Positions 1 through 64,000 of a stretch of 64,000 nucleotides of DNA are shown here, piece after piece. The stretch covers positions 1 to 64,000 of the IMG/VR virus record IMGVR_UViG_3300033997_000136; one strand, given 5' to 3'. The notes beneath the pieces are model-generated. The model had not been told where the DNA came from and searched no databases. It saw only the letters and a program-made list of their open reading frames with translations. The first letter of the stretch is position 1. The number at the start of each line of letters is the position of its first letter. A program made the position numbers and the translations under genes.

Positions 1-1
1 C

Positions 2-32
2 GAGAAGGGGTAACCCCCTTCTCTTATTTTTT
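2..32 (+). terminator. Intrinsic terminator-like hairpin
   Basis: gagaagggg-taac-ccccttctc (9-bp stem) followed by ttatttttt. Confidence 0.75.
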
Positions 33-40
33 GACGGGAC

Positions 41-442: not shown

Positions 443-460
443 TAAAAGGTATTAAAAGTC

Positions 461-1042: not shown

Positions 1043-1049
1043 ATAATAC

Positions 1050-1086
1050 GGACTCAGAGCATCCTCTGAGTCCTTAACCTTGTATG
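1050..1086 (+). promoter_or_regulatory. Hairpin followed by putative late (nvRNAP) TATG promoter core
   Basis: ggactcagag-catc-ctctgagtcc (1050-1073), TATG at 1083-1086, next ATG at 1100. TATG is the known phiKZ late-promoter core. Confidence 0.45.
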
Positions 1087-16338: not shown

Positions 16339-17232
16339 TTAAAGACGATACAGAGCCAGCAAGTTACGTGATGCAGTTTCGCTCAGACCTAAACGATTGA
16401 CTAAACCACGCACATCAAATACAGCCTGTGTTTCAAGAACACCAATGTCTGCCGTGCTGGTTAGTAATGCAATCAGATGCTGATACTTGCGAGCCTTTTC
16501 AGGCGTGTTGTGCATGAAATTACGTTCACGCCAGCCACGATAAACGGCTGTTTCAGAGAACACAGTCTTACGACCTAACTTAAACTCTTCAACCAATGCG
16601 ACCCATGCATTAGAGAAACGTTCCAGGTTTTGTTCACGTAACAATGCATCAATAGCTACACACAGTTGAGTAGCACATGAAACCGCGTCACTTGCATTGT
16701 AGCTTTTGTTCAAAGCCATTTTCTGACGGAATGATACACCAACAGCTTTCACCTGTGCAACTAATGCATCAACGGGTTGTTCTGTAGAAGCACCTGTGTC
16801 AGTTGCGTTTTGGTTTTCAACACCTTCGGTCGTTTTCACTTCCAAAGATTCACCACCTGCCATCTGTTGAGCAGCTTGCGTGATAGCTGCTACAGTACCT
16901 TCAGGGTCTTTGTCATTAGCATCCAATTGGATATCCAGCGTTTTTGCTGCTTCACCAGATTGCTCTTGCGTAGCCTGTTGTTCAGACTGTTCACCAGAAG
17001 ATTCTGGCTCTTTACCATGGTCTGCTGAGTCAACGAGAGTTTGGTCTTCAGCTAAGGTTTCACCGACTAAATCGTTAGATGTAGCACCAGTTTCACCAGT
17101 TGAATCTTGCTGAGTTTGTTGCTCAGTAGATTGTTGCGATTCTTGTTGTTCGGTTTGCTGTTGTTCAGTAACCGTTTCAGTTTGTTGCTGCTCAGTTTGT
17201 GCAGCCGCTTGGTTTTGTTTCTTACTAGCCAT
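16339..17232 (-). CDS. Probable virion protein (phiKZ gp79-like) with Q/E/T-rich N-terminal half
   Basis: 297 aa downstream of the vRNAP beta-prime gene on the same strand; low-complexity TEQQ repeats. Confidence 0.6.
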   Translation of the reverse strand: MASKKQNQAAAQTEQQQTETVTEQQQTEQQESQQSTEQQTQQDSTGETGATSNDLVGETLAEDQTLVDSADHGKEPESSGEQSEQQATQEQSGEAAKTLDIQLDANDKDPEGTVAAITQAAQQMAGGESLEVKTTEGVENQNATDTGASTEQPVDALVAQVKAVGVSFRQKMALNKSYNASDAVSCATQLCVAIDALLREQNLERFSNAWVALVEEFKLGRKTVFSETAVYRGWRERNFMHNTPEKARKYQHLIALLTSTADIGVLETQAVFDVRGLVNRLGLSETASRNLLALYRL

Positions 17233-17249
17233 GGTTTTCTCCTTTGGCG

Positions 17250-18557
17250 TTAGCGCATATTGACACGGAAGTTATATGGAACTGTCTTCAGGGTTGTACC
17301 ATGCATAGATGCCATGAATATACCCATGAATATACTTGCAGGTCGAGAACCTGCTGAGGCTAATCCAGTTGGATTATTCTCATATTTCTCACCAATACAT
17401 GTTTTACAATAATTGGCGTTTGGTGCTTTGCAAAACGCGGTTGTTCGATACACAATCGATTTACCCATATAGCGAGTAATATTGTCGTTCGTTAAACGAA
17501 CAATATGCTTACCCCCTTCGATAATATTTAAACCAATCAGTTCGTTTTTATTCAAGTCACTGACAATATCATCCATACCTAACGTACTACCGCAATCATC
17601 CATTACTAGCTTAGAGTTTTGAAGTAATTGCAAGATACGTTTCACCGCTTCACCACCGAGCGCTGTTTCAGCACCTCGGTCATAACTACCCTCACGTGAA
17701 GCGTTAATAATGGTGGGGTATTGGTTTACATCAATCCCTTCAATAAGTGGTTTTGCAATCAACGTTTTACGCGTACCATCTGTAAATGCGCTTTCACCAC
17801 CAAATGTACCGAAGAGTTTCTTACGAGAGACATTCCGTAATTTCCCTTTGATAAAGAATCCTTCAGATACATCACCTTTAAGGTGCTCTCCGTCAAACTC
17901 CACGATTTCCTTATCCATCTGAGCCAGTATCGCTGGGTCATGAAGTTGTCCTTCATACTTCTTCATTAACCCTGCTACAAACTCTTTCATCTTTGGATGA
18001 GGCGTCATCGTTTTACGTGAAGCTGATGGCACACATGTCTGTGTCAGTAATGTAGCTAAATAAGACGCTTTTTGAAACTTTAAATATTCCGTTGTGGTGA
18101 TTTCACCATCAGGTGGATTAACTCCAGGTGGATACACTTTGTATAACTTAAGAATAGCGCTCTCAAGCATACCACCAGTGATTCCTTTTTCCGGGTTCAT
18201 AAACTCAATTTTGTCGTGGAATGGGAACACCAGCAAGATAGCGTTCATCAGCGCTTGACCGTACGATGTTTTTACGGTGTCTGTTTTGATATTAGGTAAA
18301 TCCCCTTTCTTTAATGTCGTCAAGTCTTTATTCATTTTAAAGACAGGTTGACATGCATCTTCAGTGGTTTCAAAATCAGAGATATCAATACGAACACCGT
18401 TTTCATCAAATACGTACGCATGAATGCCGTCGTAGTTAACGTAGTAAGGTTCAAGAATTTCTTCCCCACGTGTGTATTGAAAGGCACGTTGTATCCAACG
18501 ATACTTTTTATACAACTGAAGTTGCAATGCTTTTAGAAATAGCGCATGACGTTTCAT
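17250..18557 (-). CDS. rpoC: Virion RNA polymerase beta-prime subunit fragment (phiKZ gp80-like)
   Basis: SREGSYDRGAETALGGE bridge-helix region, DDCGS, FCKAPNANYCKTC zinc site. Confidence 0.88.
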   Translation of the reverse strand: MKRHALFLKALQLQLYKKYRWIQRAFQYTRGEEILEPYYVNYDGIHAYVFDENGVRIDISDFETTEDACQPVFKMNKDLTTLKKGDLPNIKTDTVKTSYGQALMNAILLVFPFHDKIEFMNPEKGITGGMLESAILKLYKVYPPGVNPPDGEITTTEYLKFQKASYLATLLTQTCVPSASRKTMTPHPKMKEFVAGLMKKYEGQLHDPAILAQMDKEIVEFDGEHLKGDVSEGFFIKGKLRNVSRKKLFGTFGGESAFTDGTRKTLIAKPLIEGIDVNQYPTIINASREGSYDRGAETALGGEAVKRILQLLQNSKLVMDDCGSTLGMDDIVSDLNKNELIGLNIIEGGKHIVRLTNDNITRYMGKSIVYRTTAFCKAPNANYCKTCIGEKYENNPTGLASAGSRPASIFMGIFMASMHGTTLKTVPYNFRVNMR

Positions 18558-26197: not shown

Positions 26198-27607
26198 ATG
26201 TCAAAGTCAAAATCATTTCAACGTGTTACTATCTCCGCATATTTAGCCCGTGCTTTATTTGGTGAACAAATCCTGTCATGGATGTTTCCAAAACCGTTTA
26301 CATATTCAGAACACACTGCAAATCGTTATTTAACACACAACGACGACGCTGCATTGACAGATGTCTTCTTTGATTGGATGAATCGCTTCTTTAAAGAACA
26401 AACGATTACTGCTCCTAAAGAGAAGTTGTATCCATATACGCTGTTCCCAGCAGACGTTATTGTGACAGGACTACACAAAGATTTACCGATGCACATTGCA
26501 GTTGATGTTGCGTATTACAACACCAATCCGTTAGATACGCTAAAAGAGACGGTAGATTTTATATCGTTACATAAAGGTGAAACTCTGCAAAGTGTATTGG
26601 ATTTATCCTTTTTCCATGAACCGGGTATTGCTGCTGCTAAATCACGTGAAACTACATCAAACGGTGGTCGCGATGAACGTCAATTTAGACAACGTGTTTT
26701 TAGCAGTTTAGTTTCTGGACTTAATGAAGCTAAACGTATGCCTACAATTAAAGTTGGAACAAACCTTCAGGACTCGCTAAATGCAAAAGTGGATAAGACT
26801 ATCTACCTTGCAGCCGTCTCACCTGAATGGTTTGAATTGAACATGCGTAATTTGTACCTTGCAGCGTGTCGAGAAGTGACGTTCGGTGGTTTGAAACCAC
26901 GCAAAAGCTCTGATGTTATTAATTGGTTACAGAAGTACATTTCAGCGACTGATGTTCTTCACTCAATAGTTGACCATGTAACAACTCAGACGTTTAAAAT
27001 TGTTTGGATAGATACTAAACGTAGCGATATGGAAGTTATCTACGTAGGTACAATATTGGAATCACAACTTCAACCCAAGCAAGAAGAACCAATCGGAACT
27101 TCAACGCTTAATCGCTGCTGTGAAACCGCTGTAGGTCTTGATAAAATGTTAACTGAGTTTAAGAGCGAATTTTCAGATATTACACTTGAACAAAAGTTAA
27201 CAGAAATGTCAGATGCGGTTAAACAATGGTTATCAGCTAGTCGTCGTTTTCAGGTAAAACAATTTGCACACATTAAAGGGTGTGAGTTTAAATTGTCTAT
27301 GGATGATTTTAAACGAACGTTTGGTGCTGACTTTCCACAGATAGTCTCGTTGCGTACACCTAGTAGTTTGTTTAGCTTTTTGCAAGAACTAGATGGGCAC
27401 TCAATGACACTATTGCGTGGTGGTATTTTACTTGAAGGTAAATTAGTGGGTTCTGGATTTCCTCGTGAAACCACAGTTATATTTACCAATGAGTCTAAAC
27501 TAACATTCAAACCCAAAGGTTTTAGTAATGAACTTACGGTAGATGTTACGGATAAACGAAAGCGCCTGTTAAGCGATTACTTTAACCTATTTAACAGTAG
27601 TAAATAA
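26198..27607 (+). CDS. Hypothetical protein (accessory)
   Basis: 469 aa; AAGGA SD; no motif recognised. Confidence 0.7.
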   Translation: MSKSKSFQRVTISAYLARALFGEQILSWMFPKPFTYSEHTANRYLTHNDDAALTDVFFDWMNRFFKEQTITAPKEKLYPYTLFPADVIVTGLHKDLPMHIAVDVAYYNTNPLDTLKETVDFISLHKGETLQSVLDLSFFHEPGIAAAKSRETTSNGGRDERQFRQRVFSSLVSGLNEAKRMPTIKVGTNLQDSLNAKVDKTIYLAAVSPEWFELNMRNLYLAACREVTFGGLKPRKSSDVINWLQKYISATDVLHSIVDHVTTQTFKIVWIDTKRSDMEVIYVGTILESQLQPKQEEPIGTSTLNRCCETAVGLDKMLTEFKSEFSDITLEQKLTEMSDAVKQWLSASRRFQVKQFAHIKGCEFKLSMDDFKRTFGADFPQIVSLRTPSSLFSFLQELDGHSMTLLRGGILLEGKLVGSGFPRETTVIFTNESKLTFKPKGFSNELTVDVTDKRKRLLSDYFNLFNSSK

Positions 27608-27655
27608 AAAAGACGAATAAGAGGAAGGGCAATTGCCCTTCCCTTTATTTTTTGT
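27607..27655. repeat. 49-bp direct repeat / bidirectional terminator, copy C
   Basis: Identical to 16288-16336; lies between converging genes. Confidence 0.85.
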
Positions 27656-27657
27656 TT

Positions 27658-29376
27658 TTAATGAAGCGTGTGTTGACGTTCAAACTCTTTACACAACATA
27701 TCAAACGTAGGCGCACCTAACACTGAACAACAAATCTGTACTGCATTCATTGTCCCTGCTGTTAAGTTAACACCTGCTGCACGTCTGGTTTCTTCAGATA
27801 CACCTTGTATCTTTGAAATCTCCCCACGTGTAGTTGACTTGGATGCATTCATCGTGTCTTCTCCGGTAGGATAAGCACCGGTTACATCCAAATCATAGTT
27901 TGCTACCGAAATCCCCGTTCTGTAATTAGGAAGCTCTTCAATACAACGCAAACCATTGATGACTTTGTTGTGCGTAGCTAATGTTACAATCCATCCATCG
28001 ATGTGTGAAACCATTTTATCAAATTTAGATTCAATAGTCTTTGGTGTCGATGCAATGACATACCCATGTTGCAAACAGAAGAAGTGTAACTTGTCACATG
28101 TTCTTCTAGGTTGCTTAGAGAAGTTTGCATAATCACTAAATCCGCACTGAGAATAGATGGTACTCGCTAAGTCCATAATCTTAGGTTGTTCATCCAGTAT
28201 CTCAGCACGCACACAGTCGGCGATGTTATATACACCATACTCTACTTTAAACTTAGCCTGCATGACCATGTGACGACGTAAACCTTCTACATCTTCACCC
28301 ACATCGACATGAAGCTTTTCAGTCTTCGTGTATTTTTTAAGTAATGCATCTAACGACATAGAGGGTTCTTTACCATCCCCTAAACGCACACGTCTGAAAC
28401 AACACGCTTGGTCTAACGTATACCACGTGGCTGGTGCAATCAACGTATGCCATTGGTCATACCAATCCAAAGACGTCTCATCCCCTGCAGCAGTTTTCTT
28501 AATTCGCTGACCTTCTTGGTAGTATGCGTATTTAAACTCTTGAGGAACATCTGGGTCTGACATAATCTCATGTTCATTACCCCCATACTTACGTATCGTT
28601 TTCATAATCTCAACGATATCGAAGTCGATGTTAAAGATAGCGATAACATCAGGCATCCATTGATGTGCTTCTTTATAAATGAGTTCAATTGCATGGAGTG
28701 GACTATTTGCCACATCACACACAATCTTAATCCCGCGAGAGTCTAACTGGTCACCCATAAGTTCACGTGCTTTTTGCTGAAGTCGTTCAGGGTAATCTTT
28801 CATCCCATCTAAGAACTGTTTAGTCACCACATGGTACACACGCTCTTTCATGGTAATAGATATCATGATAGGGTCTTTTGTACCCTTATTTACATCCGTT
28901 TCGATATCCAATAAACATACACTGTTTCTTGATACACAGTTTGGCCACGTCTTCATGTACCACTGCTTAATAATTGCAGTTGGTGTGATATCCGTTCCGT
29001 ATAAATACGGATTCATGGCTATCTCTTTCATGTTTAACGTAGGACTATGTATGTTCAGTGCTTTCTTTGCAGCATATGGAAGTTCAGCCTGTGTGCAAGT
29101 AAAACGCATTAGACGTTCTACTTTTTCCCAATCTTTCTTTTCCTGATGTTTTCTAAAGCCTTCTTTAGTCACCCAGAAAGGACGTTTAAAATTAATCACC
29201 CATCGTTTATGCGGTATCTTGCGACCATCTTTTAAATGCACAACTTCTTTAATGAAAATAAGGTCGTCACGAATACCATCTGCACGTTTATAATTACTGG
29301 TTACGTAAACTGCATGTTTACATTCATACCCTAAAATATCTTCTTCCGATATTCCAGATGGAGGTGTTAATTTCAT
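27658..29376 (-). CDS. polB: Split family-B DNA polymerase, exonuclease/N-terminal subunit (phiKZ gp82-like)
   Basis: ExoI LLDIETD, ExoII FNIDFD, ExoIII YNIADC, pol motif A YDLDVTGAYP. The YGDTD-type motif C is absent, consistent with a split enzyme. Confidence 0.88.
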   Translation of the reverse strand: MKLTPPSGISEEDILGYECKHAVYVTSNYKRADGIRDDLIFIKEVVHLKDGRKIPHKRWVINFKRPFWVTKEGFRKHQEKKDWEKVERLMRFTCTQAELPYAAKKALNIHSPTLNMKEIAMNPYLYGTDITPTAIIKQWYMKTWPNCVSRNSVCLLDIETDVNKGTKDPIMISITMKERVYHVVTKQFLDGMKDYPERLQQKARELMGDQLDSRGIKIVCDVANSPLHAIELIYKEAHQWMPDVIAIFNIDFDIVEIMKTIRKYGGNEHEIMSDPDVPQEFKYAYYQEGQRIKKTAAGDETSLDWYDQWHTLIAPATWYTLDQACCFRRVRLGDGKEPSMSLDALLKKYTKTEKLHVDVGEDVEGLRRHMVMQAKFKVEYGVYNIADCVRAEILDEQPKIMDLASTIYSQCGFSDYANFSKQPRRTCDKLHFFCLQHGYVIASTPKTIESKFDKMVSHIDGWIVTLATHNKVINGLRCIEELPNYRTGISVANYDLDVTGAYPTGEDTMNASKSTTRGEISKIQGVSEETRRAAGVNLTAGTMNAVQICCSVLGAPTFDMLCKEFERQHTLH

Positions 29377-31294: not shown

Positions 31295-33883
31295 ATGATT
31301 TATCTTCGTCAAGCTTTTACTCAACAAAACCATTTACCCGATGAAGCGGAGTATCTGGATGAAATGTTTCCATCTGACGATTTACTGCATCATGCGGATG
31401 AAATTAAAGACTTGGTTGCTGAGACTATCACCCCTGATGAATTCACAACAAAGGTTCCCGGTGTTTATCGTGTCAGTGTTGAAGACGGTGACATCACACT
31501 TCAAGCAGATTGGGGTCGTATCTTAGCGATTGGTGTATTGATTGCTGGTGCGATTGCAATTGCAATTGGTATCATGCGTTCTCGCGAAGAAAGAAGCCGT
31601 GCAGAAGCATTAGAAAATGCAATTAATAAAACTGCTGATGAATTGAATAACATGTTCAAGGACTTAGGTACACAATACCACATGCAGGAGAGTGAACTTA
31701 AGGCGGCAATGGAAACCACAAACGATGCTTTAAATGCTGCGTTTAAACGTGCTACAGCAACACAAGGTGATGCGTACATTACGTATGTCAGAACATTAGA
31801 AAAAGGGAACTCGTTTAATGGTGTGATTAGTGATGTTAACACCAAAATTAGACAAGGTCTTGAAACCGTAAAGAAAACGCTTGACAAACAAGCACAAGCA
31901 AGTAGTGTATCTCAATTAGATGCATTAAAATCAGCCGAGAAGACGTTAGAAGATTATCGTCAAAAGCTGTTTGCGCATCAAGCGTGGCCTGAAGGCAATA
32001 CTCAAACTACAGATGATTTTAAATCGTTCTTAAAGAAAGCAATGACTGACCCATTGGTTCGTCGTTATTTGTTAGGAATGGATTTAAACTCATTAGTAAA
32101 ACCGCTGAGTTTATTTGACCAGGGTGATTCTAAGCAAATCAAAAAGTTACTTGACGATTGCGATATTACCTTAAAACGAATGAAGGATAAGAAAGTCGCA
32201 GATGGTGTGATGGACGACTTCAGAGAAACTAAAGACGCAATGACTCGTGTAACAGCACTGTGTTCTGAGCTTCAAAAGTTCCGTGATTTACACGTTAATG
32301 CGCTTATTGCGCTTGTAACTCAAATGGGTCGTGAAAAGAAAGACGCTTTACGTACCCAAGCGCAAATCATTCAATACGGTACACAGTTAGCCAAAGCGCA
32401 GACTCCAGAACAGCGTCAGGAAATGTTAGACGCTTTAAAGGGTCGTGAGTTATCTGAACTGTCTGATGATGAATTTGCAGAGATGGTGAAAAAGTATGCT
32501 GCGTTTCGTATCCGTAAAGACGGTACGATGCAGTCTGAACATCCAGAAGCCTCATTGCAAAGTACACGCACTGGGTTCTTTTATGACCCAGATACAAGTG
32601 TTGGTTCGATGTTAAATGACGCTCAAGCGTTTGATGAACTAGGTTCTGAAGAGCAGTTAAATATTGCTGATGCGCAAAGTAAATCAGAAATTGCGTGTAA
32701 CCATTTAACTCATTTAGAAGCGATTGTTCAAAGTGCGTTTGAAAAAGGTACAGTGTGTCGTCAAACGGTTGAATTGTTAACTGAAACTCACGGTGCATTC
32801 TTACCACCTTCTTACCCAGCAAAATCGTTTACGCTTCAGGAAACTGAACAAAACATTGATGTATTTAAAGAAGCAACCCTTCTGAAAAAGAACTCAGTGT
32901 TGACGGCTCTCATGGGTACAACGGCGTCGATGTTAGGTGCTATTCAATCGTACATGACAAAGAATCAATACGAGCCTTTGTTAAATGCCATTGAAGATTT
33001 AAACAATCAATGTACCGATGCCTTGGGTAGTGTTGTGGATTATGAAGTTGTTGCGGCGACACTGTTTACTCAATTCAATGGAATGTTTGAGAAATCAGCA
33101 GTGGCTAAATCCGTGTTCTCAACGTACCACCCTATGGCAAGTACCGCATACACAGGTAAACTGTTATCTGCTCGTGAAAAAGTGGTGGATGCACTCAAAG
33201 ACTTAATTGAAGTTGGTGAAGATTTGATTAAGTTAGCAGAAGGAATTGATTCAGGTAAATACCTGAAGAATGTTCCACTGTTAGATATTCCTAACAGTAC
33301 GCGTGAAGTGGGTAACTTATCACTGGTTCGTGAAAAGGATGCGGGATTTGTTGAAGAGCTAATCGACGTTCGTGACGACTTTGGTGATATCGACACCAGT
33401 TCATTAGAATCTGATGTGACTGCGTTAGATGTACATCTTCCGTTTAACAACACAGAATTGTCTATAGTTCGTGAACAGCTAATGACTGATGTTCTGCCGT
33501 ACGAAGAGTGGGCTGAATATGTGATGGCAAGTTTAACGTTAGATGTGATGATGCCTCGTCGTTTAGTCGACAGCGGTACGTTACAACAATCTGACTACTT
33601 AAATGAAGTAATCACAAAGTTAAACGATTTAGCGTTCAAAGGGAAAAAACCTCACTACGCACTTGCAAACGACATCCATGATTTTAGCTTAAAAGCAAAA
33701 GAGTTATCTATCTTCTGTGTTAAGTTAGAGAACCATGTGAAAGTTGCTTTAACGGTGTACACGAAGCTTATTAATACAAAAGCTTCTGTAGTAGATGTGC
33801 TTTACAAAGAAAAGGACAATTCAATTAAAGCACTTGACGTAAGAACCTTAGCAACACTTGTAAAAGCTGTGATTAACAAATAG
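31295..33883 (+). CDS. Large internal head/ejection protein, apparent two-unit polyprotein
   Basis: 862 aa; propeptide-like N-terminus (TQQ|N, TLQ|A) then a TM segment; second propeptide-like unit from M412 (TMQ|S, SLQ|S, PAKSFT motif). Confidence 0.7.
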   Translation: MIYLRQAFTQQNHLPDEAEYLDEMFPSDDLLHHADEIKDLVAETITPDEFTTKVPGVYRVSVEDGDITLQADWGRILAIGVLIAGAIAIAIGIMRSREERSRAEALENAINKTADELNNMFKDLGTQYHMQESELKAAMETTNDALNAAFKRATATQGDAYITYVRTLEKGNSFNGVISDVNTKIRQGLETVKKTLDKQAQASSVSQLDALKSAEKTLEDYRQKLFAHQAWPEGNTQTTDDFKSFLKKAMTDPLVRRYLLGMDLNSLVKPLSLFDQGDSKQIKKLLDDCDITLKRMKDKKVADGVMDDFRETKDAMTRVTALCSELQKFRDLHVNALIALVTQMGREKKDALRTQAQIIQYGTQLAKAQTPEQRQEMLDALKGRELSELSDDEFAEMVKKYAAFRIRKDGTMQSEHPEASLQSTRTGFFYDPDTSVGSMLNDAQAFDELGSEEQLNIADAQSKSEIACNHLTHLEAIVQSAFEKGTVCRQTVELLTETHGAFLPPSYPAKSFTLQETEQNIDVFKEATLLKKNSVLTALMGTTASMLGAIQSYMTKNQYEPLLNAIEDLNNQCTDALGSVVDYEVVAATLFTQFNGMFEKSAVAKSVFSTYHPMASTAYTGKLLSAREKVVDALKDLIEVGEDLIKLAEGIDSGKYLKNVPLLDIPNSTREVGNLSLVREKDAGFVEELIDVRDDFGDIDTSSLESDVTALDVHLPFNNTELSIVREQLMTDVLPYEEWAEYVMASLTLDVMMPRRLVDSGTLQQSDYLNEVITKLNDLAFKGKKPHYALANDIHDFSLKAKELSIFCVKLENHVKVALTVYTKLINTKASVVDVLYKEKDNSIKALDVRTLATLVKAVINK

Positions 33884-37844: not shown

Positions 37845-37873
37845 TTATTTTTTAACCTCATATGGAGTCTGTG

Positions 37874-39007
37874 ATGAGCACCAATAAAAGTACCTACGAG
37901 ATAGTGACTGACTTGGCTTATTTCTTAAGTCAACACTCAGGAAACTCGTTAATCGAATATACAGCCCCGGCGCGCGCTATGCCCATCACACAAGTGGATA
38001 CTCGCGCAGGCCAACTTCCTTACATTGAATCTGTTCTTCATTCGATGGTTAGCATTTATGCAGGATATTACTTACAAGCATGGCAGTTGTCATTGAATGT
38101 AGGTAATGTGGATGTAATTCGTACACTGGATAAACTGAATCCAAACCGTGACCCACTGTCTGGTGTAAAAGGTGGTCGTTTAGGTGGCTTTACGTTACAA
38201 CACGACATGTCAGCGTTACCGTTTGGCGTCGAGTCTGTTTATCCACCTAAAGCAGATAACTACACTCAGAAAAATCAATCACTGGCCGCAACACTGGGTG
38301 AAGCCGGTGCACAAGAACCACAGTCTGCTCAAATTGACCGTGACTTCTTAAAACAGCATAACGAAAACGCAAATCTATCGGTAGGTAAGATTTTATCTTT
38401 AACGGTAGAAAGTGAAAACGGTGCTAAAGCGGCTATTCCTGTGTTGGTTCAGTTGCAAGTTAGCAACGTTCAACCTGCTCTGATGGTTCATACATTAACG
38501 CTGAGCTATAAAGAAGATAAGACGCTGACAAGTCGTTTCCGCGAATGGCGTGCAGGTATGATTTCAGGCATCAACGATTTATTGTTCTGTGATGACTTGA
38601 TTCTTGAATACCGTAAAAATCTTCATGCAGATAAAGATGGTCATTTCCGTCAACGTCAACGTGCTTCGTCAAAGAACACAGCTGCTGCTATTTTAAGTGG
38701 CACACCATCTGTGGGCACTGCATCGTCTATTTATGTGATGGTTCAACAAACTGCATCTGAGTTAGAATTAAAACTCAAAGGCCGTTTGTCTGATTTCAGA
38801 ACACGTGAAAAGTTATTCGATGAAACCAAAGGTATGTTGTTGGTTGTTATCGATGACGAGTGGCAACGTGTTACGGTATACCATCGTTCTATTGAACGTC
38901 CGACTGAAGTCAGCGTCAAAGAAATTCAACGCAAGAACAAACAAAACGGTCCTGACATTCTGGAAGTATTGAATCAATACAACCAGCGTCAAAGTCCTGT
39001 GATTTAA
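37874..39007 (+). CDS. Abundant inner head protein (phiKZ gp89-like)
   Basis: GGAG SD then ATG 37874; LNPNR motif followed by TLQ|H; ENANLSVGK motif. Confidence 0.75.
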   Translation: MSTNKSTYEIVTDLAYFLSQHSGNSLIEYTAPARAMPITQVDTRAGQLPYIESVLHSMVSIYAGYYLQAWQLSLNVGNVDVIRTLDKLNPNRDPLSGVKGGRLGGFTLQHDMSALPFGVESVYPPKADNYTQKNQSLAATLGEAGAQEPQSAQIDRDFLKQHNENANLSVGKILSLTVESENGAKAAIPVLVQLQVSNVQPALMVHTLTLSYKEDKTLTSRFREWRAGMISGINDLLFCDDLILEYRKNLHADKDGHFRQRQRASSKNTAAAILSGTPSVGTASSIYVMVQQTASELELKLKGRLSDFRTREKLFDETKGMLLVVIDDEWQRVTVYHRSIERPTEVSVKEIQRKNKQNGPDILEVLNQYNQRQSPVI

Positions 39008-40499: not shown

Positions 40500-40540
40500 G
40501 TTGTTTCAACTTTAAATTGCAATTTACTGGAGTAAAATTT

Positions 40541-41833
40541 ATGACATTATTCGCACAAGCGTTTAGCCAGCAATCTGCTGAACCGGAACTGGTTGAAGGT
40601 CAAGAAGATTTAGCAACTGTTGCCCAGCTGGAAGAAGACAATGGCGAGCTGGTTGAAGCCGCTGCCGAAGTCGAAAAAGAAGCCAACATGCAATCTGACC
40701 TGGAAGAGCGCGTTGAAGTTGCTGAAGAAATCCAAACTACACTGCAGGGCATGGTTTCTGCTGGTGAAGGTATGGACCGTCGTACTGCTTTGGCCTACCA
40801 ACAAGCCTTTAAAGGTCTGATTGGTACTGTGTTACCTAACCCGGTCGGTACTGTTGAAAACTTTGGCGGTGACGCCCAGCGTTTAGAAGCTACTAAGCGC
40901 ACTCTGCAAGGTATCGCTGATACCCTGAAGAAAATCTGGGAAGCCATCAAAGCTGCCGTAGTTCGTGGTATCGCTGCCATTAAAGATTTCTTCGCCAAAC
41001 TGTTCGGTGGCACTGACTCGCTGAAAAAGCGTGCAGAAGCTCTGCGTAAGAAAATCGCTGATGCTAAATCTGAAGGTAAAGAAGCTCCTTCTGAGAAAAT
41101 CAAAGTGTCTGGCGGTGTACGTCTGCACGTTAGCGGTTCTATGGAACCAAGCGCAGTTAAAACTGGTTTAGCATTGGCTGCCAACGAAATCTCTGAAACA
41201 GCCAACAAGTTGTTAGAAGGTGCTGGTGATTATTACCAAACCCTGGCCAAAGATTTGAAGTCAACCAACGAATCAGTGGTTGAAAAGTTCATCAGCAAAG
41301 GCACTAAGAACAACATTGATAAATCAGTTGCTTCTCTGGGTTCAGCTGTATCATTGGCTCTTCGCATGAAAGGCAAACCATTGCCAGGCGGTAAGGCTAT
41401 CATTGTTGAAGTAGGTTCAAACAGCGAAGAAGAGAAATCTTTAGCTGGCAAAATCTACATCGGCGATGCACCGAAGGCTGAGTGGAAAGAATCTACCGAA
41501 GTAGCTGCACCATCTCTGGCTGATTTAGAAGCGATGTTAACCAGCATCGAATCGATGATCGCTAAAATGGAAGGCGAGAAGAAAGATGCTGAGAAATTAG
41601 CTTCTGACCGTGACGCCGCCATCAAAGCTGGTGACGAACTGATCAAAGCTGGTGAAGCTGGTAAGTTATCTCAGTCATGGGACCAGGCTAAACTGTCTGC
41701 TGCTCTGCGTCTGACTAACATGTCTTTCAACCGCACTCTGTCTTCTCTGAACAGCTACCTGTTCGGTGTGAGCCGTGCTGGTCTGCAGTACGTTGATAGC
41801 TGTGTATCTTCTTACAAGAAGAAAGCAGCTTAA
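40541..41833 (+). CDS. Highly expressed internal head protein of the phiKZ gp93-97 paralog family
   Basis: Acidic propeptide, then NFGG...EAT..TLQ|GIADTLKKIWEAIK family motif; strong codon bias; GGAG SD then ATG 40541. Confidence 0.8.
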   Translation: MTLFAQAFSQQSAEPELVEGQEDLATVAQLEEDNGELVEAAAEVEKEANMQSDLEERVEVAEEIQTTLQGMVSAGEGMDRRTALAYQQAFKGLIGTVLPNPVGTVENFGGDAQRLEATKRTLQGIADTLKKIWEAIKAAVVRGIAAIKDFFAKLFGGTDSLKKRAEALRKKIADAKSEGKEAPSEKIKVSGGVRLHVSGSMEPSAVKTGLALAANEISETANKLLEGAGDYYQTLAKDLKSTNESVVEKFISKGTKNNIDKSVASLGSAVSLALRMKGKPLPGGKAIIVEVGSNSEEEKSLAGKIYIGDAPKAEWKESTEVAAPSLADLEAMLTSIESMIAKMEGEKKDAEKLASDRDAAIKAGDELIKAGEAGKLSQSWDQAKLSAALRLTNMSFNRTLSSLNSYLFGVSRAGLQYVDSCVSSYKKKAA

Positions 41834-41873: not shown

Positions 41874-41902
41874 GCACTCAGGGGCAACCCTGAGTGTTTT
41901 TA
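41874..41902 (+). terminator. Intrinsic terminator with GCAA tetraloop
   Basis: gcactcaggg-gcaa-ccctgagtgt then tttt. Confidence 0.8.
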
Positions 41903-41935
41903 TTCGTCATTTTAGTTGACTTGGAGTTTAGTGCG

Positions 41936-43177
41936 ATGACATTTTCTACTGACGAATTAACACATGCTGAACTAATAGCTCCTCAAGTGCAGGGTGCTGT
42001 TCATGAGGCAGACATGTTATCAGAAACATTTGAGCAAAGCTGCACTGTGTTGTCTGAATTAAATACCCCTGATGAATTGTCTCTGCAATCACGTCGTCTT
42101 TGTCACACTACTCTGCAAGGTATGGTTCATCATCACGGTTTAGATATAACACTGCAGTTTGAGAACACAGACGGTAGTTTAAAAGAAACAGCTACTCGTA
42201 TCAGCATTAGTGCAGCAAAAGCAATCGTCGCTGCAGGTGAGATGGCGTGGGGTAATCTTGCAGACATGTATGTTCGTAGTCTAGCAGATACAACAACAAT
42301 TCGTGGTTACTTGAGTAAATTAAATAATCGCATGGATTATACTCAAGGAAAAGAACAAGGCGATGAGGTGTTAACCTTTAAAGGGTTATGGTACACGTTA
42401 AGCGTAGATGGTAAGAATCCACGTGATGCTCGTGATATTCTACTTAACATCAATCGCATGACAGAAACATGTGATGCAGTTCTTAACAAATGGACTAAGG
42501 AAATTGAAACGGCTGGTAATTTATTTTTAAAGGTAGTAAAGAAATACGACCCTGCTGAAATGAATAGCGAGTTAGTTTTACGTGACTTAGTACAAGCTGC
42601 TGAGAAGTTAGACTTTGGTTATCTGCAACGTATTTTAAAAGTAAACAAAATCACAGACCCTCGTTATGAAGGTCATGTGTACAAGAGTGAACCTTTAAGT
42701 GGTGATTACTCATTGTTTATTTATCGTCCTGATTTATTTGTGTCTACTAAAGCAGATACTGTAAAACGCGCTGTATCGCTTCGTCGTCGCACATTTAAAA
42801 TACAGCGAACTCATCCCACCTATCGTGTAAAACTCGATGAGGTGAAGATACAGGCGCTTTCGGTGGATGATGTCGCAGAGATACGTGAATCGATTAAAAA
42901 GCTAATGGATGTGTTAGAAAGTTATGACCGCAGTGGACGTGGTAAGGCGATAGTGAAGATTGGTGAACAGATTCAAGGTCATCTTAAGAACGAGATGAAT
43001 TTCCTTGAACGAAATGTAGAGTTTCTTTCTGGGAACTACACAGCCAGTGTGTATCGTTTTTCAAATGCATACATGCGCTGGGCATCCGACCCAATGAGTG
43101 GATTGATTTCACAAGCCATGGCATTAAGTCGTGCCGCAATTAAAGTGTGTAACGCAAGTTTATCAGCTTATCAATAA
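41936..43177 (+). CDS. Internal head protein paralog (gp93-97-like)
   Basis: GGAG SD then ATG 41936; SLQ|S, TLQ|G, TLQ|F in the first 75 aa; LSGDYSL and RAAIKVC family-like motifs. Confidence 0.7.
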   Translation: MTFSTDELTHAELIAPQVQGAVHEADMLSETFEQSCTVLSELNTPDELSLQSRRLCHTTLQGMVHHHGLDITLQFENTDGSLKETATRISISAAKAIVAAGEMAWGNLADMYVRSLADTTTIRGYLSKLNNRMDYTQGKEQGDEVLTFKGLWYTLSVDGKNPRDARDILLNINRMTETCDAVLNKWTKEIETAGNLFLKVVKKYDPAEMNSELVLRDLVQAAEKLDFGYLQRILKVNKITDPRYEGHVYKSEPLSGDYSLFIYRPDLFVSTKADTVKRAVSLRRRTFKIQRTHPTYRVKLDEVKIQALSVDDVAEIRESIKKLMDVLESYDRSGRGKAIVKIGEQIQGHLKNEMNFLERNVEFLSGNYTASVYRFSNAYMRWASDPMSGLISQAMALSRAAIKVCNASLSAYQ

Positions 43178-53675: not shown

Positions 53676-55859
53676 ATGAGTACAAAACAACGTTTCTCCA
53701 AAGCTTTATCAGCAATGCTGGGTCGAGTGGAAGAATCCCTGAAACAAAATGCACCGCAATTCCAGGACAAGTTTTACAGTGCAATGACACTGCAAAGCGA
53801 CGCCGCCAACTTCGACGATGAAGAGCTGAAAAACACTCAGACTTCTATTGCTGAAGAGCTGGTGACTATGGCCAACGAAGTCGATGCCGAGTTAATCGAA
53901 AAAGACGAACTTGAGCCACTGACTGTTCAATCTGCCGCTATCAAAGCTGGTCTGATGATTTCTGCATTATACGGCAACACCAACGCTGCTGGTAAATATG
54001 CTAAAGCCGCATTAACCAACAGAAAGACTGGTGATGACGTTATCACGTTACAAAGCATCCAGTTTGGTCCTGGTGGTGAAGTTGAAGTAGCACGTCATGG
54101 TGACTACACGCAACAATCATTCGACAACAACGAACTGGGTAAATACATTCCACGTTCAGTATTGTTTAACGTGTTAGCCAGCCGCCAAGACCGTTTCGGT
54201 GAAGCATGGTTCCCAACTCACGTTATGGCTCCATCAGAATCAGGTTTAGCGATCACTGTTGAGCGTCAGGAAGTCATCAGCTTCGCTACTCGCGATGCCA
54301 ATGGTAAGCCAATCTCTATCCCGCGTAAATCGCTGGTGAAAGCATTTAAAGACCACAAAATTTTAAGCCGCCCTTCTACTGAGCTGGTGCCGTTTGTTTC
54401 TGCTGAAAACGACGTGTACATGATTGACGAAGCGCTGGTCGGTAACCGCAACTTCCCAGTTGGCGATGCGAACATCGTAACTCGTCCGCTGAAAATCGGC
54501 ACTGAAGTAAACATGTTGGGTGTGTCTAACTCTCCAACTCTGTTACAAGGTGGTGTGTTAAACACGACTGACGAAATGGCCGTGGGTGGTGGCGTAAAAG
54601 CACTGTACGTATCTTTCACAGATGGTACTGCTACTGAAGTATTCAGCTTCAACACTGAAATGGCTTCACGTAACCAATTCAACCCAGCGCCGCAAGGCAA
54701 AGACCGTGACATTCAGTTAATGATGCCTGCGGTAACGTTGATTCTGGATAAGAACAGCAAACTGCACAGCGACGTTGACTCTACTTTGTTAGCCCGTATC
54801 AAAACGGATGACCTGGTTGTTAAGTTAACTGTAGCAGTCACTGGTTACGGTTCTCTGCAAACTTCAAACGTTGTGGTCAACGCTGCCAAAATCAACGTGG
54901 TTGAAGTGGTCAACGCTGCCAAAGAAAGCCTGCCTCTGGGTGATGGTGTAGGTAAAGAAATCGCTGATTTAATCAACGGTTTAGCACCACAAGCAATCGC
55001 ATGGGACCCAATGTTCCGTCGTTCAAACACCAACTGGCGTACTCTGGGTGACTTAGTTGATGTATCATCTTACAGCATGATCATCGACGTACAACCAGGC
55101 TACCCACTGGCAGTTATCAGTTCTACTGAAGAAGAACAACACGGTATGAAGTTAGCTGGTATCATTAACGCTAACCGTGCTCGTACTTCAAACTCAGCAG
55201 TAACTACACTGATTAACTACGTAGACCACTTAGGTGCACAAACCGAAGCTCTGCGTCGTGGTGTGGATGTTGATATCGCAGGTCAAGGTAAGTGGTTAAT
55301 CACTCCGTACCATGCTGAAGTGAACTGTGACGTTGTAGACCGCGTTCGTAACCGTCGTAGCGGTGAGTTAGTGCAAGATATTTGCTGGGTACTGGTAGAT
55401 GCTATCCGTGACGCAGCGTATCAGATGTACACTGAATCACAATACGGTACTGTGTTGGAAATGGTGACTGGTTCTCCAGACATGAAACCAACTATCGTTA
55501 TCGGTTGTGACCCAATCACTGAACGTTACTTAAACATCGCTGGCGATACTCGTCTGCTGGGTGATAAGTTTGATGTTCAGGTTGTGTCTACTTACGACGA
55601 CCGTATGTATGACAACGCTGTCGACGAACGTACTCTGTACATGTCATTCACTCGTAAACAGCCAGGTCACTTAGACTGCGCTGGTTTTGGTACTTTCGCT
55701 ATCATTCCTGAAATGATGCAGAAGATCACCATGGACCGTGATGGCACCACTTATACGCAAGACCGCGTGATTCCTCGTCAAATGCACGTACCGGTATTAC
55801 CGTGTGCAACCAAAATGACGATTAAGAACCTGTCTGCTGCTGTAAACGGTCAGATTTAA
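53676..55859 (+). CDS. Major capsid protein precursor (phiKZ gp120-like)
   Basis: 727 aa; SVLFNVLASRQDRFGEAWFPT, RPLKIG, WDPMFRRSNTNWR; very strong codon bias; propeptide of about 147 aa. Confidence 0.92.
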   Translation: MSTKQRFSKALSAMLGRVEESLKQNAPQFQDKFYSAMTLQSDAANFDDEELKNTQTSIAEELVTMANEVDAELIEKDELEPLTVQSAAIKAGLMISALYGNTNAAGKYAKAALTNRKTGDDVITLQSIQFGPGGEVEVARHGDYTQQSFDNNELGKYIPRSVLFNVLASRQDRFGEAWFPTHVMAPSESGLAITVERQEVISFATRDANGKPISIPRKSLVKAFKDHKILSRPSTELVPFVSAENDVYMIDEALVGNRNFPVGDANIVTRPLKIGTEVNMLGVSNSPTLLQGGVLNTTDEMAVGGGVKALYVSFTDGTATEVFSFNTEMASRNQFNPAPQGKDRDIQLMMPAVTLILDKNSKLHSDVDSTLLARIKTDDLVVKLTVAVTGYGSLQTSNVVVNAAKINVVEVVNAAKESLPLGDGVGKEIADLINGLAPQAIAWDPMFRRSNTNWRTLGDLVDVSSYSMIIDVQPGYPLAVISSTEEEQHGMKLAGIINANRARTSNSAVTTLINYVDHLGAQTEALRRGVDVDIAGQGKWLITPYHAEVNCDVVDRVRNRRSGELVQDICWVLVDAIRDAAYQMYTESQYGTVLEMVTGSPDMKPTIVIGCDPITERYLNIAGDTRLLGDKFDVQVVSTYDDRMYDNAVDERTLYMSFTRKQPGHLDCAGFGTFAIIPEMMQKITMDRDGTTYTQDRVIPRQMHVPVLPCATKMTIKNLSAAVNGQI

Positions 55860-58899: not shown

Positions 58900-58920
58900 A
58901 GATATACATTATAACTGTGA
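58900..58920 (+). promoter_or_regulatory. Putative early promoter motif, copy 6, inside a 12-bp inverted repeat
   Basis: agatatacattataactgtga; atcacagttata (58874-58885) is the reverse complement of 58910-58921. Confidence 0.6.
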
Positions 58921-58949
58921 TACAATCCCCCACAGGAGTCGTTCTAACT

Positions 58950-60902
58950 ATGTCACAAAATTTACCAGCATTACCGGATTATCCGATAGACGAGCAATAC
59001 GTCTCTCAGCTCCCTCGGATTAATTACCAGAACTACGGTGTAGACCGTAAATTAGGTGAAGCTGTCACTGCATTGGTTGTTGATGAAATTCAACGTCGTA
59101 CTGAGCAGGAAGACAATCTTGCCTTCATGTGTTTTAACTATTACAGCTACAGCGGCTTTGAGAACAATGAGTTTGATGAACTGTTAGAAGCTGTGTTTGA
59201 TTATTTACTGGCGTATTCAGATGTAAACAACGTCGACCCGTATGAATTACTTCCTGATTTGGTGGTTGATGCGGTGACTGCAAAGTGTGCGCAATTAGCA
59301 CAAACATGTGGTTTCGACCGTTACTTCCCAGCATACCGTCAAATGGTCAGTGAAGGGATGCGTCTTGCTAATGAAATCATTAACTTCATGCGTTCAGTTT
59401 CCGCACCAGCTCCAGCACACCAGCGTGGTCCACAACAACGTACAGCACAACGTTCAGCCTATAACGGTCCTGTTCAACAAGGTCGTCAAGCGCAACAACA
59501 GCGTCCAGTAGTGCGTAGTGGTGTAGGTAATCAGATTCGTAGCGATGTTCAACAACATACGTCGATTAACCGTGCGTATACTGCACCTACAACACACGTT
59601 ACTCGTCCAGGTATCGGTGCAGTAGGTCAAGGTAATGTTACACGACCAGAGCGCGAAGTTGCTCAGCGTCCTGCAACTAATAGTCGCACATTTGTACCAA
59701 CAGGTACTGGTGCGCTTAAGACTAGCAGCTATGCTCGACCAGGTAACGCAGTACAAGCTCAATCTGCACAAAGACCAGCAGCCATTCGTTCAATGGCATC
59801 TGCTGATGCGTTTAGTAATGCGGTGCGTAAGCATTTGAATTACGACACACCAGAAGTGTACAATGTACCACTTGCTGTGTTACCAGACCACACCATTTTG
59901 TATCGTGAACAAGATGGTACAAGTCAATTAGAATACTACGGTGTCCCCACTAACCAATTAGAAGGAGTTCCAGGCGTGGACTATTTAAAACTCGAAACCG
60001 ACCCACGTGCTTTAGCGCGCGCAACGCAATCTCAAACCAAAACCAAACTGGCTGATTTACCAGCAGAAGCTCCAGCAGTACCTACTGCTGATACCAAAGA
60101 AACGTTTGTGAAAACGCTGGCACCGATTGTGTTACCTGAAACTATCCAGGCCAACACATTGTCGCAAGCTATTGCTGACGCTCAGTCTATTCTGTTCTCT
60201 ACGTTTGATATTGAACCAAACGAAAACAGAATCCTGGAATTTAAAGTGGACATGATTAACGAGCATCTGTATTGCAGTGTAGAAGATGCCGACCACATCC
60301 GTTCACTTAGCCGTAAGCAGGAATTCCACACACTTCGTGATTTGTTAAAGACTGTTCGCAGTGAAGTGGATGAAAGCGTGTACTGGGCGATTGAAGACCG
60401 TATCACGATGATGTTTAACAACACCATCGAAAGCAGCTTAGGTTTGAAAGTTAAGATTGATTCGTTCAGTCAAGACTTCGACGAGCTGATTCCTTATCTG
60501 GGTAAAAAGTATCCAAACATCAGCGAAACTGCGGTGCAGAAGTTCTTAGCTACTGCACTCTTTGCGATGACTCGTTCATTAACTGACAAAACACCAAAAG
60601 ACCCAACGAAGTACGATGGTATCTTGCGGTTATCAGTTCCTATGTACGTTGCTTTATTACCCGTTCCTGCTGGCAATTTAAACATTGCATTGATTGAACG
60701 CTTCTCGTTGTTAAGTTCAGAAACACATCCTGAGCTGCACAACATCCTGACTAACCTGATTGAACGTACTACAGATGCAAAAGGTGCAACCGTTGTATCT
60801 CGTATTGTTCGTACCATCGACGGTATCTATCTGGAAGTCAGTCAGAACGCGTTTGCCAATGACCAGGTGATGATTCGCCAGTATAAACCAAGACCGTTTT
60901 AA
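58950..60902 (+). CDS. Conserved hypothetical protein with long central disordered R/Q/A/P region
   Basis: CAGGAG SD then ATG 58950; helical N-domain, low-complexity aa 150-300, folded C-domain. Confidence 0.72.
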   Translation: MSQNLPALPDYPIDEQYVSQLPRINYQNYGVDRKLGEAVTALVVDEIQRRTEQEDNLAFMCFNYYSYSGFENNEFDELLEAVFDYLLAYSDVNNVDPYELLPDLVVDAVTAKCAQLAQTCGFDRYFPAYRQMVSEGMRLANEIINFMRSVSAPAPAHQRGPQQRTAQRSAYNGPVQQGRQAQQQRPVVRSGVGNQIRSDVQQHTSINRAYTAPTTHVTRPGIGAVGQGNVTRPEREVAQRPATNSRTFVPTGTGALKTSSYARPGNAVQAQSAQRPAAIRSMASADAFSNAVRKHLNYDTPEVYNVPLAVLPDHTILYREQDGTSQLEYYGVPTNQLEGVPGVDYLKLETDPRALARATQSQTKTKLADLPAEAPAVPTADTKETFVKTLAPIVLPETIQANTLSQAIADAQSILFSTFDIEPNENRILEFKVDMINEHLYCSVEDADHIRSLSRKQEFHTLRDLLKTVRSEVDESVYWAIEDRITMMFNNTIESSLGLKVKIDSFSQDFDELIPYLGKKYPNISETAVQKFLATALFAMTRSLTDKTPKDPTKYDGILRLSVPMYVALLPVPAGNLNIALIERFSLLSSETHPELHNILTNLIERTTDAKGATVVSRIVRTIDGIYLEVSQNAFANDQVMIRQYKPRPF

Positions 60903-63559: not shown

Positions 63560-64000
63560 ATGACTAAAAGAGCCGATATTCGGACAGCTGATCACCGTCG
63601 ACGTGTTCAAGCATCGATTATTCGTAAGCTAGTGGCAGACCCACAGCTAAACCCGTCGTATGACAGCGAAGGGAACCGTAGACTTGGCCAACCACCGACA
63701 ACGTTAGCTAACACTATTTCAACGACAACAGCGCAGATATTGGATGATGTAGAATCGTTACGTCAGCTATTGCCTGACGTTGAAGTTGTAGACCAAATTT
63801 TGATTAGCAGTATCTTATCACCCAAAGATTTGTCTACACCTCATTTGACGTACTCTGCTGAGATTGAATCAGAATCCACAGAGTTATTGGGGTTAATGTT
63901 AAATTACGTGGAAGACTTTTTCACTAAAACATATCAGATTAACAAGAAGCTTCCTACGATGCTTCGTGATATGTTGTTTAAAACAGGTAGTCACATTAGT
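63560..64000 (+). CDS. Portal protein, 5-prime part, truncated by the window end (phiKZ gp129-like)
   Basis: Hand translation from ATG 63560 is open to 64000 and contains LLPDVEVVDQILISSILSPKD. Confidence 0.8.
   Translation, partial: MTKRADIRTADHRRRVQASIIRKLVADPQLNPSYDSEGNRRLGQPPTTLANTISTTTAQILDDVESLRQLLPDVEVVDQILISSILSPKDLSTPHLTYSAEIESESTELLGLMLNYVEDFFTKTYQINKKLPTMLRDMLFKTGSHIS

Follow-up and report, generated by a model that had tools for sequence, protein, structure and literature searches.

Does the head maturation protease of this phage cut after glutamine, where prohead proteases of the T4 and phiKZ types studied so far cut after glutamate? The question is raised by the major capsid protein (MCP) gene in the window, the 64,000-nucleotide stretch analysed here, which is the first 64 kb of a roughly 212-kb genome of an uncultured, nucleus-forming, chimallivirus-like jumbo phage (IMG/VR record IMGVR_UViG_3300033997_000136). 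A sequence-only reading had noted four T-x-Q-S motifs in the first 150 residues of the MCP, and had inferred that P1 specificity switched from Glu to Gln in this lineage. The relevant features are the following (the arrow stands before the P1' residue).

53676..55859 (+): major capsid protein gene, 727 aa, phiKZ gp120 type
53676..54116 (+): predicted N-terminal propeptide, residues 1-147, predicted to be removed at Q147↓S148
53787..53798 (+): site 1, T38-L-Q40↓S41
53922..53933 (+): site 2, T83-V-Q85↓S86
54045..54056 (+): site 3, T124-L-Q126↓S127
54108..54119 (+): site 4, the predicted maturation cut, T145-Q-Q147↓S148

The observation is correct. The encoded protein matches the phiKZ-type major head protein family (phrog_3231, E 1e-125; PF25620 PhiKZ_MCP on its relatives), and phmmer matched it to the solved Goslar and phiKZ MCPs (E 2e-57 and 4e-38). 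The motifs TLQS (residues 38-41), TVQS (83-86), TLQS (124-127) and TQQS (145-148) are the only T.QS motifs and contain the only four QS dipeptides of the protein, and the last one is followed by SFDNNELGKYIPRSVLFNVLASRQDRFGEAWFPT. Chance is excluded, since 0 of 20,000 whole-protein shuffles and 0 of 20,000 shuffles of the N-terminal 150 aa reach four, and the expected density of T.QS in this proteome is 0.2 per 1000 aa. An independent ENA assembly (k141_91455) carries the identical MCP DNA with 0 nt differences, so that the four CAA codons are not assembly errors, and codon reassignment was also rejected, as all ORFs read normally in the standard code. One correction to the sequence-only reading is that the N-terminal 150 aa also contain three S/A/G-x-E motifs (AEE61, ANE68 and GGE135), of which GGE135 is invariant in the clade.

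To explore whether these motifs correspond to known cleavage positions, we aligned the MCP with characterized and metagenomic relatives. Q147↓S148 aligns residue for residue with E163↓N164 of phiKZ gp120 (G-L-E163↓N164), the mapped maturation cut (PMC11297242), and has the same 20-residue spacing to the ASRQD motif as S-T-E↓A in Bacillus phage AgentSmith. The boundary lies just before the conserved N-arm (ASRQD...FPT), tblastn alignments to many phage MCPs begin at residues 144-147, and the deposited Goslar MCP chain 36za starts at the residue aligned with S148. Among the metagenomic MCPs of the clade (P0001 to P0005), sites 2 to 4 read T-x-Q-S or T-x-E-S in every member. The nearest relative with Glu sites, P0003 (52% identity), has T-L-E-S, T-M-E-S and T-Q-E-S at sites 2, 3 and 4, respectively. 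Site 2 is T-x-Q-S in P0001, P0002, P0004 and P0005, site 3 is T-[LM]-Q-S in the other relatives, and P0005 is mixed, with T-M-E-S at site 4. Site 1 is the least certain of the four, because Q40 is invariant in the clade but the T and S are not conserved in the more distant members.

The protease itself was not found inside the window, where tblastn with phiKZ gp171-180, a family HMM on all six frames with filters off and a Pfam scan of ten candidate ORFs of 190-380 aa all found nothing. Searches of IMG/VR with conserved peptide or DNA patterns did not find the gene, and a profile search of 1.84 billion representatives found 1154 family members, the best 150 of which could not be tied to contigs. 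Synteny with AgentSmith gave only a rough guide. The gene was reached by walking the source contig, and lies at about 177.8-178.5 kb of this 213-kb contig, about 124 kb downstream of the MCP gene and outside the window (positions 17177-17935, minus strand, of the walked locus L214). Its 252-aa product carries PF20034 (MEROPS S80, the family of phiKZ gp175, SPN3US gp245 and 201phi2-1 gp268), scores E 1.1e-62 against a 9-phage family profile over profile positions 3-216, and keeps RGEFGHP, FSGR and TFDYV. The catalytic residues H77, S151 and D176 fall in invariant columns of 20- and 65-sequence alignments and correspond to SPN3US H77, S153 and D178 (triad assignment from PMC5694885). The gene order, virion RNA polymerase beta, gp177-like, gp176-like and protease (products of 1449, 548, 242 and 252 aa on one strand), is that of phiKZ gp178-gp175, and was also compared with Aphrodite1.

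The two conserved self-cleavage sites in the C-terminal tail of this family are both Gln in the phage enzyme, reading SPQLQ↓S (Q195) and TMQ↓S (Q227). In 377 aligned family members the first position is Glu in 368 and the second in 326 sequences. Gln occurs at both sites only in this phage and in four close relatives (proteases P0274, P0275, P0277 and P0278), and one apparently misaligned sequence also shows Q at the second site. The first site is the experimentally mapped self-cleavage site of SPN3US gp245, AQE-203 (PMC5694885), although it has Gln, not Thr, at P3 in our phage. The protease P0276, encoded on the same 203,677-bp ENA contig (NODE_66) as the Glu-type MCP P0003, is 60% identical to the phage enzyme and has Glu at both sites. 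The states of enzyme and substrate therefore match within each genome. In the tree the six-member subclade has 100/100 support, all outgroups are Glu-type and a single origin of the Gln type fits, although support for the Gln-type enzymes forming one group is modest (72/46). The short contigs of P0005 and P0277 could not be linked to one genome, as they come from different samples.

We also compared other proteins of the phage with those of the Glu-type genome carrying P0003, and found similar Q-for-E swaps in the following genes.

37862..39007 (+): conserved 381-aa protein of unknown function (phrog_3239) in the tail/head structural gene block, with candidate cut T111-L-Q113↓H (nt 38192-38203); T181-V-E↓S keeps Glu
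40517..41833 (+): internal head (inner body) protein 1 of the phiKZ_IP family, with predicted cuts T75-L-Q77↓G (nt 40739-40750) and T129-L-Q131↓G (nt 40901-40912); T112-V-E114↓N keeps Glu
41894..43177 (+): internal head protein 2, with candidate cuts T73-L-Q75↓G (nt 42110-42121) and T86-L-Q88↓F (nt 42149-42160)
63560..64000 (+): start of a 910-aa candidate portal gene that runs off the window, with predicted propeptide cuts beyond it at T208-L-Q↓S and T271-L-Q↓A; T165-L-E↓S keeps Glu

Internal head protein 1 matches phrog_2497/8282 'internal head protein', and its ortholog in the Glu-type genome carries PF12699 and reads T-I-E↓Q, T-Q-E↓G and S-L-E↓S at these positions, within well-conserved flanks. 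The sites of the 37862 protein align with K-L-E↓S and S-V-E↓S, also with conserved flanks. In internal head protein 2 (phrog_8282), T86-L-Q aligns with S-L-E in the relative, but the alignment of its N-terminal region is weak. The candidate portal was assigned from its size and long N-terminal region and matches AGENTSMITH_63, annotated 'putative structural protein'; the full gene, read in the walked locus L210 (724-3456), aligns with T-L-E↓S, S-L-E↓S and T-L-E↓S in the Glu-type relative. Portal propeptide cuts in SPN3US are at about residue 161 and at AQE-254 (PMC5694885). Gln in a T-x-Q context aligns with Glu in 11 of 41 cases, against 27 of 363 for other Gln (Fisher p = 5e-4), and ten of the 11 are in the capsid protein, the candidate portal, the internal head proteins, the protease or the 37862 protein. 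The TLQ tripeptide occurs 17 times in the window proteome against 5.3 +/- 2.3 expected (0 of 300 shuffles reach 17), while TLE and [SAG]LQ are not enriched.

These results support the interpretation that the protease has very probably shifted its cutting preference from Glu to Gln (we estimate a probability of about 0.78), although the evidence comes from sequence alone, since the phage is known only from metagenomes, and cleavage at these sites and a changed substrate pocket are inferred. Every check suggested by the sequence-only reading that could be run in silico came out in favour of it. In this reading the MCP is made with a 147-residue propeptide that the phage's own S80 serine protease fragments at Q40, Q85 and Q126 and finally removes at Q147↓S148, and the candidate portal, at least two internal head proteins and the C-terminal tail of the protease are cut at the same kind of site. 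The preferred site would be T-(L/V/M/Q)-Gln followed by Ser, Gly or Ala, against (S/A/G/T)-x-Glu followed by any residue in the rest of the family. The change is derived, as outgroups and the sister lineage have Glu at these positions where an aligned residue exists, and each swap is a single GAA-to-CAA change. Enzyme and substrates must therefore have co-evolved, most probably through an enzyme that accepts both Gln and Glu, and the present enzyme may still accept both. 'Gln-preferring, perhaps Gln/Glu' is thus safer than the 'glutamine-specific' of the sequence-only reading.

No clear pocket substitution explains the switch. The catalytic residues and the conserved Arg residues (R92, R153) are unchanged, and the two columns that discriminate Gln-type enzymes are not uniform among them (Asp or Ala; Ile or Asp). 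The one candidate determinant is the loop holding a family-conserved Asn (phiKZ N53), which is Asp in this phage, Ser in the sister enzyme P0276, Asn in 364 of 372 other members, and Asp or Ala only in the Gln-type enzymes.

The alternative that survives best, although we consider it less likely than not, is that specificity broadened without switching, so that the protease of the whole subclade accepts both residues and individual sites drift between them by single GAA/CAA changes. This is consistent with the T-x-E sites retained in the candidate portal, internal head protein 1 and the 37862 protein, at positions that hold [S/T]-x-E in the relative, with the mixed propeptide of P0005, with T-L-E↓S at residues 9-12 of the virion RNA polymerase of a Gln-type contig, and with the fact that no decisive pocket substitution was found. 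One reverse case also exists, at residue 505 of the protein encoded at 58917-60902, which has T-I-E↓S here against T-L-Q↓S in the Glu-type genome. However, neutral drift would not give near-uniform states within a genome, and here 4 of 4 capsid sites, 2 of 2 protease sites, 2 of 3 portal sites and 2 of 3 sites in internal head protein 1 are Gln, whereas the sister genome has Glu at every one of these positions for which an aligned residue exists. Both self-cleavage positions are also Gln in all five Gln-type enzymes.

It is improbable that the protease remains strictly Glu-specific, with the T-x-Q-S motifs as uncut structural or scaffolding features and the MCP maturing at G-G-E135↓V or another x-x-E site. 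The invariant GGE135, 12 residues upstream of S148, fits the classical motif, and the catalytic and conserved basic residues are unchanged. Nevertheless, this view does not explain why the self-cleavage glutamates are Gln in exactly the lineage whose substrates carry Gln, why T-x-Q aligns with the mapped phiKZ cut and with T-x-E of the sister genome in the capsid, portal, internal head and 37862 proteins, or the threefold excess of TLQ. Least likely is an unrelated Gln-specific protease of phage or host, which cannot be excluded because only about 105 kb of the genome was read and phiKZ-like phages carry a diverged protease paralog (SPN3US gp117, PMC5694885; a second weak hit in AgentSmith), but the swaps sit in the S80 enzyme's own self-cleavage sites, no other protease family turned up among the window ORFs scanned or in the Pfam labels of the walked loci, and the known paralogs lack the catalytic His (PMC5694885).

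The rule of cleavage after Glu is used to predict mature virion proteins in giant phages, and motif-based prediction of propeptides fails for this clade unless T-x-Q is allowed. The Gln-type and Glu-type sister lineages offer a system for studying how a protease and a dozen substrates change specificity together without losing an essential assembly step, and such a pair of orthogonal capsid-targeting proteases could be useful for packaging engineered proteins into phage heads. A more speculative and rather unlikely possibility is that a whole maturation system was re-coded, with at least a dozen cleavage sites in six proteins converted to match the enzyme, and that this may have been driven by escape from host defences that sense prohead protease activity through Glu-containing 'tripwire' loops, which would be a new kind of immune escape. 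A 2026 preprint reports such sensing for CBASS and T4 gp21, in which a Glu-to-Gln loop mutant was blind to the protease (PMC12991175).

Compared with other systems, the T4 gp21 prohead protease (MEROPS S77) plays the same role, processes itself and trims propeptides at several sites after an acidic-type P1 within a three-residue motif (I/L-x-E), but its P1 is Glu and its P3 Leu or Ile. It appears to be only remotely related; the family profile did not detect it among PDB sequences and a Foldseek search of the PDB with an AlphaFold2 model of the phage enzyme (mean pLDDT 84.6) gave no match with E <= 0.001. The likeness to coronavirus 3CL proteases, noted in the sequence-only reading, and to picornavirus 3C proteases is convergent and concerns only the site, with Leu at P2, Gln at P1 and a small P1' residue. 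Those enzymes are unrelated cysteine proteases with a chymotrypsin-like fold that process polyproteins of RNA viruses, whereas the only head protease found here is an S80 serine protease, and no 3C-like family was labelled in the walked loci, about half of the genome being unread. phiKZ gp175, SPN3US gp245 and 201phi2-1 gp268 act on the same substrates (capsid, portal and internal head proteins), with long propeptides holding several sites, and differ from the system described here in having Glu instead of Gln at P1 of the conserved sites and Ser/Ala/Gly rather than Thr at P3. The P1' Ser preference matches the SPN3US logo (PMC10052503), and Thr at P3 is already known from 201phi2-1 (TFE-275, PMC5694885).

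Analysis of the 727-aa protein encoded at window 53676-55859 (+) showed that it matches the phiKZ-type major head protein family over nearly its whole length (phrog_3231, E 1e-125), and that its best solved relatives are the capsid proteins of E. coli phage Goslar and of phiKZ. The observation in the sequence-only reading of four T-x-Q-S motifs in the N-terminal region of this protein is confirmed: the motifs are TLQS at residues 38-41, TVQS at 83-86, TLQS at 124-127 and TQQS at 145-148 (sites 1 to 4), and they are the only T.QS motifs and the only four QS dipeptides in the protein. None of 20,000 shuffles of the whole protein, or of its first 150 residues, reached four. All four Gln codons are CAA, and an independent ENA assembly carries the identical gene.

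The source contig of the record IMGVR_UViG_3300033997_000136 is JGI contig Ga0310131_000050, of 213,150 bp. The 133-aa gene at window 41-442 appears again at about 212.1 kb of this contig (in the segment at contig positions 192365-212820), and the contig ends repeat its first roughly 1.1 kb (window 1-1085), indicating that the genome is about 212 kb and probably circular or circularly permuted. The region just upstream of the window start, at about 183-212 kb of the source contig, holds a chimallin nuclear-shell gene (PF25677), a PhuZ-type tubulin (PF00091), a divergent DNA polymerase piece, the tail sheath (PF20961) and a tail tube gene. The phage is therefore a nucleus-forming, phiKZ-like (chimallivirus-like) jumbo phage. 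It has no close cultured relative; no record in the GenBank phage collection is closer than about 32% capsid identity. The large protein database searched holds five relatives of the capsid protein (P0001 to P0005), at 94, 56, 52, 49 and 48% identity.

To explore whether the motifs sit at cleavage positions, we aligned the capsid protein with its relatives. In the phmmer alignment to phiKZ gp120 (PDB 8y6v), Q147 pairs with E163 and S148 with N164; phiKZ gp120 is cut between Glu163 and Asn164, and the cryo-EM model starts at residue 164 (PMC11297242). Bacillus phage AgentSmith has S-T-E|A exactly 20 residues before the conserved ASRQD motif, the same spacing as T-Q-Q|S here, and many tblastn alignments to phage capsid proteins start at residues 144-147. 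The deposited Goslar capsid chain 36za begins at the residue aligned with S148, although the residues before the first deposited residue in Goslar (PDB chains 11bt and 36za) read E-S-E-E-L-V-Q-L|S, and the true cut is probably at S-E-E|L, four residues upstream; we found no published cleavage data for it. Within the clade, sites 2, 3 and 4 are conserved as T-x-(Q or E)-S: P0001, P0002 and P0004 have Gln throughout, P0003 has T-L-E-S, T-M-E-S and T-Q-E-S, and P0005 has Gln, Gln and Glu. A failure of the sites to align with known cleavage positions, which would have counted against the interpretation of the sequence-only reading, was therefore not observed, although site 1 is the weakest of the four, since only its Gln is conserved. 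In addition, G-G-E (G133-G134-E135, window 54072-54080) is invariant in all six capsid proteins of the clade and fits the classical S/A/G-x-E motif, 12 residues before S148; it could be an additional cut or an ancestral one.

The protease gene is not in the window, and it was located by walking the source contig. It lies at 17177-17935 on the minus strand of a reversed locus of that contig (L214), which corresponds to contig positions of about 177,755-178,513. The product is 252 aa, is labelled PF20034 Peptidase_S80 and scores E 1e-62 against a family profile. It is encoded by the last gene of a block with products of 1449 aa (virion RNA polymerase), 548 aa, 242 aa and 252 aa, which is the phiKZ gp178-gp175 arrangement. 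The enzyme keeps the catalytic His (RGEFGHP), Ser (FSGR) and Asp (TFDYV), corresponding to H77, S153 and D178 of SPN3US (PMC5694885). The residue between the catalytic Ser and the invariant Arg is Gly (FSGR) in this subclade and its Glu-type outgroups, and Ile, Val or Leu in the reference phage proteases aligned here (AgentSmith, phiKZ, SPN3US-like SPLA3, EL, Desertfox), a difference that is unrelated to the Gln/Glu difference.

The family has two conserved Glu residues in the C-terminal tail, and the first of them (phiKZ SPALE210, SPN3US AQE-203) is the mapped self-cleavage site of SPN3US gp245 (PMC5694885). We aligned 377 family members, comprising database hits, representatives of a 1154-member family, 80 IMG/VR loci and reference phages. 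The first position is Glu in 368 of them and the second is Glu in 326. Gln occurs at both positions only in this phage (SPQLQ195|S, TMQ227|S) and in four relatives at 97, 64, 61 and 58% identity, and one apparently misaligned sequence (P0207) also shows Q at the second site. The protease P0276, encoded on the same 203,677-bp contig as the Glu-type capsid protein P0003, has Glu at both (SPQLES, SLESGG). Enzyme tail and capsid propeptide therefore agree within each genome and differ between genomes.

Other proteins with T-x-Q or T-x-E motifs are listed below, some of them with the aligned motif of the Glu-type relative:

Window 40517-41833, internal head protein 1: T-L-Q|G at residues 75-78 and 129-132, against T-I-E|Q and T-Q-E|G in its 58%-identical ortholog, in otherwise conserved sequence.
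Window 37862-39007, a protein with T-L-Q|H against K-L-E|S.
Internal head protein 2: T-L-Q|F against S-L-E|F, in a weaker alignment.
Window 63560 (start), a 910-aa candidate portal (our assignment): T-L-Q|S at 208 and T-L-Q|A at 271, against T-L-E|S and S-L-E|S.
Window 31295-33883 (+), an 862-aa protein without any PHROG family: T-L-Q|A (68), T-M-Q|S (411), T-L-Q|E (513) and T-L-Q|Q (762); a candidate further substrate, such as a head or ejection protein.
Window 26198-27607 (+), a 469-aa protein without any PHROG family: T-L-Q|S (129); also a candidate further substrate of this type.
Window 58917-60902 (+), a protein with the reverse case at residue 505: T-I-E|S in this phage, where the Glu-type relative has T-L-Q|S; it may or may not be a cleavage site.
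Window 16339-17232 (-), a 297-aa protein with no PHROG family, whose first roughly 45 residues are a Gln/Glu/Thr-rich low-complexity run (repeats of T-E-Q-Q-Q) followed by an acidic region; it accounts for 6 of the T-x-Q matches in the window, and these do not look like protease sites.

Over all orthologous pairs, Gln in a T-x-Q context aligns with Glu in 11 of 41 cases, against 27 of 363 for other Gln (p = 5e-4), and ten of the 11 lie in the capsid protein, the candidate portal, the internal head proteins, the protease or the 37862 protein. In non-structural proteins, T-x-Q is simply conserved as Gln. The tripeptide TLQ occurs 17 times in the window proteome against 5.3 expected, while TLE and [SAG]LQ are at expectation.

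A maximum-likelihood tree of the protease domain, from which the tail sites were excluded, gives the six-member subclade 100/100 support. All outgroups are Glu-type and one origin of the Gln type fits, though that branch has weak support (72/46), and the change is therefore derived, from Glu to Gln. Each site needs one G-to-C change, and since an essential enzyme and a dozen sites cannot all flip at once, an intermediate that accepted both residues is implied. Tolerance for Glu may persist, as suggested by portal T165-L-E|S, internal head protein 1 T112-V-E|N and 37862 T181-V-E|S in this genome, by T-L-E|S at the N-terminus of the virion RNA polymerase on a Gln-type contig, and by T-M-E|S at the maturation site of P0005; the reverse case at residue 505 is a further reminder that both residues occur in both genomes. 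We therefore describe the enzyme as Gln-preferring, although it may still cut after Glu.

The triad and the invariant arginines of the family are intact, and only two protease-domain columns separate the five Gln-type enzymes from all 372 others. The family Asn (phiKZ N53) is Asn in 364 of the others, Ser in 7 (including the sister P0276) and Gly in 1, whereas it is Asp in this phage and in P0274, and Ala in P0275, P0277 and P0278. The residue two positions later is Ile or Asp in the Gln-type enzymes. Every Gln-type enzyme has two acidic residues in this short loop, which is a candidate determinant and not a demonstrated one. The AlphaFold2 model of the enzyme is confident (pLDDT 84.6), but no matching solved structure was found.

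The literature that could be searched describes only Glu-directed cleavage for these enzymes, namely A-x-E with P4 Val and P1' Ser for SPN3US (PMC10052503, PMC5694885), Glu cuts for phiKZ (PMC11297242) and I/L-x-E for T4 (PMC12991175), and full-text searches combining prohead protease, glutamine, cleavage motif and jumbo phage returned nothing about a Gln site. By sequence, triad and gene context the enzyme is a member of family S80, and it departs from the family in the one feature that defines its specificity. The likeness to the coronavirus 3CL protease that the sequence-only reading had pointed out is limited to the L-Q|S look of the site. The interpretation of that reading, a switch of P1 specificity from Glu to Gln, is supported by several independent lines of comparative evidence and contradicted by none, but in the absence of demonstrated cleavage it remains a prediction, and 'Gln-specific' may turn out to be 'Gln and Glu'. 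A 2026 preprint shows that a CBASS sensor is triggered when T4 gp21 cuts a Glu-containing loop, and that changing the Glu of the loop to Gln blinds it (PMC12991175), which makes escape from such sensors a conceivable, though untested, driver of the change.

Additionally, our analysis uncovered a second, weak match to the protease family in Bacillus phage AgentSmith (AGENTSMITH_182, at 26923-27831 of the AgentSmith locus L208; E 4e-15), which is probably the counterpart of the diverged, His-less paralog described for SPN3US (gp117). No such paralog was seen in the parts of the present genome that were read. ARAGORN found no tRNA genes in window 1-64000, and the GC content is even across the window, at 40-43%.
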